From Antechinus flavipes (lineage: Eukaryota), in NCBI RefSeq assembly GCF_016432865.1, contig NC_067401.1, positions 109,182,001 to 109,246,000 of the forward strand: a DNA stretch of 64,000 nucleotides, given 5' to 3'. The translations under genes and the position numbers were made by a program. Positions 30,901 through 33,900 of the stretch are shown here, one piece after another (the first letter of the stretch is position 1; each line of letters starts with the position of its first letter). The notes below the pieces were generated by a model that did no database searches, was not told where the DNA came from, and was given only the letters and a program-made list of their open reading frames with translations.

Positions 30901-33900
30901 TCCTGGTCCCCACTCCGCCCTGCAGCTCGGCTCCTGAGTACCTGGGCTAGGAAGCCCTGGCAGGTGCCAGACTGGAATTCCTATGCAGAGGAAGATTTGT
31001 GGGAAGGAGGAAGGAGCTGGGGCTGAGGAGGGAAGGGAAAGGGGGCCATAAAGGATCAATAGGGTGAGAAGGTGAGAATGATTCTTTAAGGAAATGGAGT
31101 AAAATATCTCACTGAGGACAGATGGAGAAGGGCTGAAACTGCAGCAAGGAAGGATTGTAGCTAGATAGCTGGTTAAGACATGAATGATGGAATAAGAAAG
31201 CTGATAAGAGGAAAAAGCCTCATTGGCATTCATCTCTCAGTGGATATGAGTTCCTAGTAAAGTAAAAGACTTAAAAGGCTAAAGACTAAGGAAGGTGAAC
31301 TTTTCCTTAAAAAAACAAACAAAAAAACCCAACCCAAAACTATTGTAATAAGACACTGGATTAAGGGACAAGACACCTTGATGAAAGGCAAGGTTATGGC
31401 TGAGATGACCTCAGGAAGGTCAACTATTCCAAACTTAGTAAGTTACAGACAAATAGGCTCTGGGAATTTGAAGGAAGAGCAAAGATGGAGAATCCGAGAT
31501 CCTAGAGCCCAATCTCTCTACCTACCAACATACTCAGGAAGCCCACACCGACTGACGAGGCACATGTTTTTCTCAATTTTCTGGGCCATTCCGAAGCCAA
31601 TTATCTTGATCTTAGGTTTAATAACATCTTTCTGCTGTAGCATGATGTTCTCAGGCTAGGGAGAGGGAAAAAGAAATTCTTGGCCAGCTCTCAGTTCTTA
31701 CATCATCAATTCAAATTTATTCAACCCAGGTTTGCAGTACCTGCTATAGCCATAAGGGATGGGAGAAGTGCAAGCAATATTCTAATACTATATCACTTCT
31801 TATGTCCCAGTTCTGGTACCCGACCAGCTCCCAAATCTATGGTGTCTCCAATAATAATAATCATGCACGTATATTTGCTTGTATATATCTTTTTTCCCAC
31901 AACCACCATCTAAACCCTGAGTTCCCAGGCTCCTGTTCTTTGCCCTTATTTCACCATCTTTGACATTCTAGTGTCAGCAAAACCTGTCCCCTATATCCAT
32001 TCTATGTAAGGAGCGAGGTATCTTGTGAACTTTGGGAGTGATCTCTATATCAATTGAAATATACCAGTTTTGTAGTGTAGGAGCTGTCTTTATATACTTG
32101 GATTTTATTTTAATGGGAAGGAAAGTTAAATATCTAGTTCACTAAGGGGTTATATGATAATGAATAGAGATGGAGTGACTTAAGCCCAGCCTAATGTCAA
32201 AAAGGATTCATAATTCACTAAAAGTGAATTTGGGATTTAAAGAGTGATCTTGGCCCAGAGAACCCAAGTGAGTGAATCCCAAACTGGATTTGGCTATGCT
32301 TCTGGAGGCAATAAGAAATATGTCATAGAATGCTTGGTCATCTCATCTTGTAATGTTCAAAATGAATAAAAACAACAAAAAGCAAAACCTCCAAACTCTT
32401 ATATAGACAAAGTTGCATTTTGCAACAAGGCATCTTACAAAGGATGAAGGAGTATAGAATTTCTATTAAGTACTATAAAAGATCTCCCAAATCAAATCAA
32501 CTTATATCTTGATACATAGTGACTTCCATGTGAAAGCAAGGAAAAAATGTCAGAAAACATGATTAAGAAATGAAACTAAATGTTTGAGAGATACTCAAAA
32601 GCATTATACCTGTATATCATGCTTTAAGAAAAATGTTAGAATATGCTAAAAATGGAATATAACAAGCATTTTTAAAAACTGAAACCAATTAAATCATAAT
32701 GTAGCTTATAATTATCAAAATTCTGAGTTCATGGATCTGCCGTCTCTTAAAAATCTCTCTGGCTTTTTCCCTATGTAGGATTTTCTCTGGGAACATCAGA
32801 ATTTGATTCATATCTCCTCTCTGTTCAGTCTCTTTGCATTTCTTTGACCTTGCAGCCTCCCCCTTTTAAAATTTAAATCCAAGAGTATAAATCCAAGATT
32901 TGTATAAACTAGCCATTCAGTCAATATAGTGTTACAATGAACAACTCAAATTTAAGATAATTTCATACCTTCTTACAGTGAGTTCTGACATCAATGTCAG
33001 AACAAAGAAACATATCAAGAGGCAACAAGTATTCAGGGGAAGGAATTTAGTGTTGCTAGATCATCACCCCTAATAAAATTAAATTCCTAGGAATTTTACA
33101 CTTTGGTCAGGAAAGACTCCTCCTAGGATGTACTTGGGAATGTGTGTATATATGTGTGTGTGTGTGTATAACATTTATATATGTATAAATAGTTAAGAAA
33201 AGATCCAATTATTCTTTTGGTTTCTAATGTTTAACAGAAATGTGTTGCATTTTGCCAAAAAAATTTCTATTGACAAATTTTGTTGGTGTTTGTATTATGC
33301 TTGTGATATAACATAGTAGGCTCTTGGTTAATATTTTATTTAAAAGTTTTACATCAATGTTCAATAGATATTCATCTATAATCATCTTTGTGTTGATTTC
33401 CCCTAATTTAGAAATAGATGTATTTGTGTCATAGAATGAATTTTATAGGATCCCATCTTATTTTTTCTTTCGTTCTCTTTTTTTCAAACAGTTCTTGTAA
33501 TACTGGACTTGTTATTTCTTGAATGCTTGCTAGAATTCACTCATAAATTCATCAGGGTTCTAGGGTAGTTTTTCCCCCCTTTTGGGAATTCATTTATGTT
33601 TTTTCATTTTTTCCCCTAAGATTCAGTTATTTATGCGCTCTATTTCCTGTTGTTAATTAATCTGGGTACTTTATATTTTTATAAATGTTGAATTAATCCA
33701 TTTTAGTTAAGATTGTCAGTTTTATTGGCATATAATTTAAAGTTTCTAAAAAAATTTTTTTCACTTAATTGGTTGGGAATTCATCTTTTAATTTTTGATG
33801 CTTGAATAATTTGGTCTTCTTTTAAAATCAAGTTAGTTAATGGCTTATCTACCTTTTTTAAAAAAAAAACTCCTACTTTTATTAAATTTTTTTCTTTCAA

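Follow-up and report, generated by a model that had tools for sequence, protein, structure and literature searches.

The conversion of an active protein kinase into a pseudokinase is a well-known evolutionary pattern, and the described systems that lie closest to the gene considered here are the death-associated protein kinases DAPK1, DAPK2 and DAPK3, together with two members of the CaMK group, PSKH2 and CASK. PSKH2, the paralogue of an active kinase, is a lineage-restricted CaMK-group pseudokinase in which one canonical catalytic residue has been lost, and which is conserved in some lineages and absent elsewhere. CASK is a MAGUK scaffold that combines its CaM-kinase domain with other domains, and this kinase domain lacks the catalytic-loop Asn. 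To our knowledge, no DAPK-family member is listed among the known pseudokinases. A kinase domain may be classed as a pseudokinase from its sequence if it lacks one or more of three residues, the VAIK Lys, the HRD Asp and the DFG Asp, but is intact in other respects (PMC13519141). The subject of the present analysis is a gene on the reverse strand of a 64,000-nucleotide stretch of the genome of the marsupial Antechinus flavipes (NCBI RefSeq assembly GCF_016432865.1, contig NC_067401.1, positions 109,182,001 to 109,246,000), referred to below as the window, in which the position of the DFG Asp is occupied by Gly. The gene is the marsupial orthologue of DAPKL, a fourth vertebrate DAPK paralogue, and we consider it likely that marsupial DAPKL is a conserved pseudokinase which has been kept for a non-catalytic role.

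The coding span (27881..45446, minus strand) contains 11 coding exons with a coding sequence of 1083 nucleotides, and in the gene model, which was built from the window sequence, all introns start with GT and end in AG. The spliced product of 360 amino acids is 100% identical to XP_051849714.1, the Antechinus flavipes ‘death-associated protein kinase 2-like isoform X1’; this annotated protein was recovered by searches with the 73-residue exon 2 and with an alignment of exon pieces and lizard or bird matches. Residues 13-275 match the Pfam profile PF00069 (Pkinase) over its full length (profile positions 1-263 of 263, 1.3e-67, 228 bits against a cut-off of 31.7), and the closest solved relatives found in a PDB sequence search are DAPK1, DAPK2 and DAPK3 (1e-109 to 1e-93), with twitchin and CaMK1 next (about 1e-60). 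Identity to DAPK2/DRP-1 and to the kinase domains of DAPK1 and DAPK3 is about 47-52%. Residues 6-318 of the product align with the same residues of DAPK1 without a gap, which allows the numbering of DAPK1 to be used directly. The product has the hallmarks of a DAPK, which are the catalytic loop HFDLKPEN and the basic loop (residues 45-56), and the kinase domain is followed by a segment of putative calmodulin-binding autoregulatory type, QRKW305KLS308, which can be aligned to the autoregulatory domain of DAPK1 and which keeps S308, the autophosphorylation site in DAPK1 and DAPK2. As in DAPK2, this predicted autoregulatory domain precedes a short tail, whose CESDQED...RRRxSSxS pattern is conserved from fish to marsupials.

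An AlphaFold model generated from a 63-sequence alignment, with a predicted local distance difference test (pLDDT) score of 84, places the predicted autoregulatory helix at residues 293-331 and superposes on the kinase and autoregulatory domains of DAPK1 and DAPK2 with a target-normalised TM-score of 0.95-0.97 and a root-mean-square deviation of about 1 Å; the predicted structure also matches entries for the DAPK1-calmodulin and DAPK2-calmodulin complexes. The model bears on the fold and says nothing on activity. An earlier model computed from a 21-sequence alignment was discarded (pLDDT 41.7, nonsensical secondary structure).

Despite the annotated name ‘DAPK2-like’, the gene is not DAPK2. 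It falls in a clade of its own apart from DAPK1, DAPK2 and DAPK3 and occupies a different locus, beside INSRR. In the maximum-likelihood tree the DAPKL clade has a support of 100/100 and an inner topology that matches the species tree, and the marsupial sequences are monophyletic within it (100/100). The marsupial stem, at 0.41 substitutions per site in the protein tree, is the longest internal DAPKL branch; the monotreme stem measures 0.23. Searches with the exon 2 peptide, together with follow-up searches, matched hundreds of proteins named ‘DAPK2-like’ in fish, amphibians, reptiles, birds, monotremes and marsupials. Marsupial DAPKL shares with its non-marsupial orthologues common neighbouring genes, the GSGHF Gly-loop, the autoregulatory helix and the acidic and serine-containing tail, and the ten 3' exons are equal in length across the window, Sarcophilus, Dromiciops, platypus, Crocodylus and Alligator, the exception being 3 nucleotides in the last platypus exon. 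The gene already carries an annotation, and the paralogue has been recorded before, at least in a synteny table: under the name DAPKL, Lamb & Hunt 2018 place it on gar LG24 and on chicken chromosome 25, enter a ‘-’ for human and assign it to a paralogon that corresponds to human chromosome 1q (PMC6170504, supplementary table). No eutherian copy was present among the 120 best protein matches, with no direct search of any eutherian genome, and on the basis of these matches and the published table eutherians appear to have lost DAPKL.

The residue change that sets the marsupial gene apart lies in exon 4 (31526..31655, minus strand, 130 nucleotides), which encodes PEN144, the GFG motif with G161, and the activation segment as far as GL180PEYV, and whose borders are a canonical acceptor (ccctag) and a canonical donor (gtaggt). 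The 43-residue peptide aligns to DAPK1 without gaps in a PDB sequence search, and it reads IIGFG and CGLPEYV at the places where DAPK1 has IIDFG and FGTPEFV. Codon 161 (31596..31598, minus strand) is GGC, for Gly, where the DFG Asp is expected, and codon 180 (31539..31541, minus strand) is CTT, for Leu, where the P+1-loop Thr is expected. A first-pass annotation made from the letters of the window had reported both substitutions, GGC at 31598-31596 within IIGFG and GL in place of GT within GLPEY; in-frame translation and alignment to DAPK1 bear out the first, and the second was found as described, with CTT at 31541-31539.

Gly161 is present in 10 of the 10 marsupials seen (Antechinus, Sarcophilus, Trichosurus, Notamacropus, Petaurus, Macrotis, Dromiciops, Monodelphis, Gracilinanus and the window), while Asp161 is present in all 16 non-marsupial orthologues, which comprise both monotremes and 14 others from reptiles, birds, amphibians and fish, and in all four of the DAPK1, DAPK2 and DAPK3 sequences compared. 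At the level of DNA, GGC was read in the window and in Dromiciops as well as in two independent assemblies of Sarcophilus, and platypus has GAC. The pattern at residue 161 corresponds to one change on the tree, and by this pattern D161G is a single ancient event on the marsupial stem which took place before the living marsupials diverged. With the DFG Asp replaced by Gly161, K42 and D139 present and the domain otherwise intact, the protein falls within the sequence definition of a pseudokinase. The change was not confined to the metal ligand. In non-marsupial DAPKL the motifs are DFG and CGTPQYIAPE and the activation segment is near-invariant, whereas marsupials have GFG (GFE in opossums), a rewritten segment and a roughly threefold higher ratio of non-synonymous to synonymous substitution rates (dN/dS, or omega). 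There are 23 positions that are invariant outside marsupials and changed in at least eight of the nine marsupials, and seven of these 23 fall between residues 161 and 190, within the activation segment (hypergeometric p = 0.003).

The second substitution has a different history. Thr180 is found in every non-marsupial and also in Dromiciops (codon ACT, compared with ACG in platypus), and the residues at this position in the other marsupials are L, L, L, I, I, M, V and I, which requires at least six changes, all within marsupials. T180 would on this evidence have been lost after D161, repeatedly, as a consequence of relaxed constraint. The first-pass annotation had spoken of two separate losses; both are real, but they are not equivalent, since D161G is single and ancient and the change at 180 is later, repeated and still lacking in Dromiciops. 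Both opossums, Monodelphis and Gracilinanus, have gone further, with N144I, I160T, G163E (giving the motif GFE), a one-residue deletion and W305K. N144 (AAC) is kept in the window, Sarcophilus and Dromiciops, and Asn is present in 7 of 7 Australidelphians, with Ile in the two opossums only. The order indicated by these distributions is a stepwise erosion of the catalytic site, with D161 lost first, then T180, and then N144 and G163 in opossums. The opossum autoregulatory segment reads RKKKQS, compared with RKWKLS, so that K replaces W305, the calmodulin-anchoring Trp in DAPK1 and DAPK2, and Q replaces L307; the opossum proteins may have lost calmodulin binding along with the catalytic residues.

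A rival reading is that marsupial DAPKL is still an atypical kinase, either metal-independent or very weak, which operates with K42, E64, D139 and K141 in the way proposed for CASK. The residues G20, G22, K42, E64, E94, E100, D139, K141, E143 and M146 of the pocket and catalytic loop are kept in 9 of the 9 marsupial proteins aligned, D161 being the exception among sites of this kind, and the retention of these ten has a probability of about 0.008 under random retention. Antechinus also keeps APE185-187 and R263, and the inventory of retained elements given in the first-pass annotation (Gly-loop, K42, E64, HFD139LKPEN144, APE and the subdomain XI Arg) was found to be accurate, with G20/G22 and K141 included. 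The retention of N144 in seven Australidelphian species, and of S308, a site of autophosphorylation in DAPK1 and DAPK2, likewise favours an atypical kinase, as does the precedent of CASK, which also belongs to the CaMK group, has GFG, and for which activity in the absence of Mg2+ was reported (Mukherjee 2008, cited in PMC13519141). CASK also keeps the Lys of VAIK, the Glu of helix C and both the Asp and the Lys of the catalytic loop (in part from PMC13519141). The explanation by an atypical kinase is nevertheless unlikely. Position 180, whose Thr assists the catalytic Asp and Lys, varies freely among L, I, M and V. The opossum gene is equally intact despite the loss of N144 and of the DFG glycine, so selection is apparently not acting on phosphotransfer. 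Many dead pseudokinases retain the same residues for nucleotide binding, and the CASK precedent is itself disputed, since activity was undiminished when the remaining catalytic motifs were mutated, and a 2026 review considers it likely that the Mg2+-independent activity came from a contaminant (PMC13519141).

The likeness to CASK that the first-pass annotation had drawn is only partial for this species. The substitution of GFG for DFG is borne out, but the second Mg2+-ligand loss of CASK, that of the catalytic-loop Asn, is not found in Antechinus, where N144 is retained, and the activity of CASK is in dispute (PMC13519141). The resemblance does not come from shared descent, and CASK differs in being a MAGUK scaffold with further domains. 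Within its own family, marsupial DAPKL differs from DAPK1, DAPK2 and DAPK3 in the absence of the DFG Asp and the P+1 Thr, in addition to the separation of clade and locus described above. PSKH2, as cited in PMC13519141, belongs to another family and lost another residue, and the conversion of DAPKL differs from it in having occurred within one orthologue lineage, both states of which are present in living mammals (D161 in monotremes, G161 in marsupials).

If marsupial DAPKL were a neutrally decaying pseudogene whose reading frame is open by chance, then the loss of a key catalytic residue, the long marsupial stem, a crown omega some three times the background and the apparent outright loss of the gene in eutherians would all be accounted for. 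The reading frames are intact, at 359-360 amino acids, in ten marsupial species, and the three marsupial genomes read at the DNA level share the same arrangement of 11 exons, in lineages that have been diverging from one another since the marsupial crown. Coding sequences were obtained by exact spliced mapping for Antechinus, Sarcophilus, Dromiciops, platypus, Crocodylus and Alligator. Antechinus and Dromiciops differ by 47 non-synonymous and 54 synonymous changes (Fisher p = 6.5e-14 against neutrality), which gives a dN/dS of 0.21 by NG86 and 0.26 by maximum likelihood; over the kinase domain only, the ratio of the proportions of non-synonymous and synonymous differences (pN/pS) is 0.24 and the NG86 dN/dS is 0.21. 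Antechinus and Sarcophilus differ at 7 nucleotides and 1 amino acid. The corresponding dN/dS for crocodile and alligator is 0.08-0.12. In a branch model fitted to 359 codons with our own implementation of GY94-F3x4, omega is 0.210 for the marsupial crown and 0.067 for the background, a difference of about threefold, and twice the log-likelihood difference (2ΔlnL) is 54.4 against a crown omega of 1 and 14.5 against a crown omega equal to the background, so that both are rejected. The raw non-synonymous and synonymous counts do not differ significantly between marsupials and crocodilians (p = 0.12), while the likelihood branch test is significant. Purifying selection has held DAPKL through the entire marsupial radiation, relaxed about threefold relative to the background, and the pseudogene explanation is highly improbable. 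A fault of assembly or sequencing, or a variant private to the sequenced animal, is excluded as the source of GGC. The sole support for it is that GGC lies one base from GAC, whereas the same codon occurs in the Sarcophilus and Dromiciops assemblies already mentioned, and ten marsupial species have Gly161 in their annotated proteins. The first-pass annotation had taken an intact fold with a targeted loss of phosphotransfer residues to indicate a pseudokinase rather than random decay, a view with which the fixation of G161, the intact frames, a dN/dS of about 0.2 and the retained pocket agree; it had also named observations that would speak against it, and these were looked for and not found, since the close relatives carry no GAC at this codon, the dN/dS does not approach 1, and no stops occur in sister species.

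The reading of marsupial DAPKL as a conserved pseudokinase thus follows from the combination of one ancient metal-ligand loss, the ongoing erosion of phosphotransfer residues, the retention of the fold, pocket and regulatory modules, and an omega of about 0.2. On the marsupial stem, a change from GAC to GGC replaced the Mg2+-coordinating DFG Asp with Gly, with much of the activation segment being rewritten, and conventional Mg-ATP phosphotransfer would most likely have been lost at this step. The P+1-loop Thr then drifted in several lineages, with opossums losing N144 and the DFG glycine in addition, and the protein stayed under purifying selection that kept the kinase fold, the nucleotide pocket, the autoregulatory helix and the RRRxSSxS tail. 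Marsupial DAPKL probably binds nucleotide. By analogy with other pseudokinases it may serve as a scaffold or an allosteric partner that responds to Ca2+/calmodulin, for which other DAPK-family members or their substrates would be candidate partners; a role as a 14-3-3 client is also possible on the same analogy.

Several considerations weigh against the pseudokinase reading. The loss of activity is deduced from one class of residue, and the retention of K42, E64, D139 and K141, and of N144 in Australian marsupials, would fit a weak or unconventional kinase too. Three marsupial coding sequences entered the codon analysis, and two of these hardly differ from each other; omega on the marsupial stem is not interpretable, the branch length having run to about 5, because synonymous sites are saturated there. 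The eutherian absence is likewise a matter of the 120 best matches and one table, with no eutherian genome searched directly. A more far-reaching version of this natural and datable conversion within one orthologue lineage, in which the GFG form binds nucleotide and calmodulin and retains a real metal-independent or otherwise unconventional phosphotransfer, is quite unlikely.

The remaining exons, all on the minus strand, distribute the elements of the protein as follows. Exon 1 (45385..45446) contains the start codon and 20 residues, followed by a split S; exon 2 (42966..43187) encodes the Gly-rich loop, K42, the DAPK basic loop, E64 and beta4-5; and exon 3 (42361..42499) encodes the hinge, GGEFFDF, helix E and the start of the catalytic loop, HFD139LK141. 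The GGEFFDF at residues 98-103 is shared by Australidelphians and, likewise, by the orthologue of a salamander (Ambystoma), compared with GGELFDF in nearly all other DAPKs and GGELFDS in opossums, the ribose-contacting E100 being kept. Exon 5 (30801..30849) encodes 17 residues, exon 6 (30326..30352) is a micro-exon of 27 nucleotides that encodes SVGVITYIL, exon 7 (29759..29911) covers C-lobe helices G-H, and exon 8 (29133..29178) runs from ERMT to HPWIK at the end of the kinase domain. The predicted calmodulin-binding autoregulatory segment starts in exon 9 (28861..28950), which aligns to the autoregulatory domains of DAPK1 and DAPK2, and the remainder of its helix, from LS308 onwards, is encoded by exon 10 (28234..28317). 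Exon 11 (27881..27961) contains the acidic CESDQED stretch, the C-terminal RRRHSSYS and the stop codon.

The Sarcophilus protein differs from that of Antechinus by 1 residue. In Petaurus the gene model is without the micro-exon 6 stretch SVGVITYIL and has a short gap in the tail, probably a matter of annotation. The sauropsid orthologues (Crocodylus, Alligator and others) have an additional 5' coding exon and an N-terminal extension of about 40 amino acids, which is missing from the mammalian, frog (isoform X2) and fish proteins. Gene length differs greatly between species, from 4.2 kb (platypus) and 4.6 kb (crocodilians) to 17.6 kb (Antechinus) and 25.6 kb (Dromiciops). Intron 3 of the window gene (31656-42360) accounts for 10.7 kb and contains the only run of N in the window (35821-35961, 141 bases). 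In Petaurus, a ribosomal protein L19e-like gene, likely a retrocopy, lies in an intron on the opposite strand. In Dromiciops, a 298-residue Pex19-domain gene is annotated on the opposite strand across the entire 29.6-kb locus, and either DAPKL sits in one of the introns of that gene or the model is over-extended.

The gene has conserved neighbours. The gene order in platypus is PRCC, an SH2 gene, DAPKL and an INSRR-type receptor; in Monodelphis an SH2 gene lies upstream of DAPKL and a 1306-residue gene downstream, and in Gracilinanus an SH2 gene lies upstream. The plus strand of the window contains INSRR-like exons at 807-4596, in pieces of 24-89 amino acids with 48-81% identity to the platypus INSRR-type receptor. 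DAPKL and the INSRR-like gene are convergent in the window, on opposite strands, as they are in Monodelphis. In platypus both genes are annotated on one strand, with the INSRR-type gene 1.6 kb downstream of DAPKL, and this difference in orientation suggests an inversion in one of the two lineages. The open reading frames of the platypus SH2 and PRCC genes had no match in the window at E < 1e-6, and SH2D2A was not detected in the 64 kb.

A full-text search of the literature retrieved no paper on the marsupial-wide GFG or on any DAPK-family member as a pseudokinase. DAPKL is an unusually clean case of such a conversion, since the gene is canonical in monotremes, sauropsids, amphibians and fish, crippled but selected in the marsupials examined, and apparently missing in eutherians. 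If the GFG protein does keep a metal-independent activity, then it would be an independent second case, within the same kinase group, of the disputed CASK mechanism. The gene offers a system in which to ask why a calmodulin-regulated kinase fold persists after catalysis ends, and how marsupials differ in the wiring of the DAPK signalling that acts in autophagy, cell death and the cytoskeleton.

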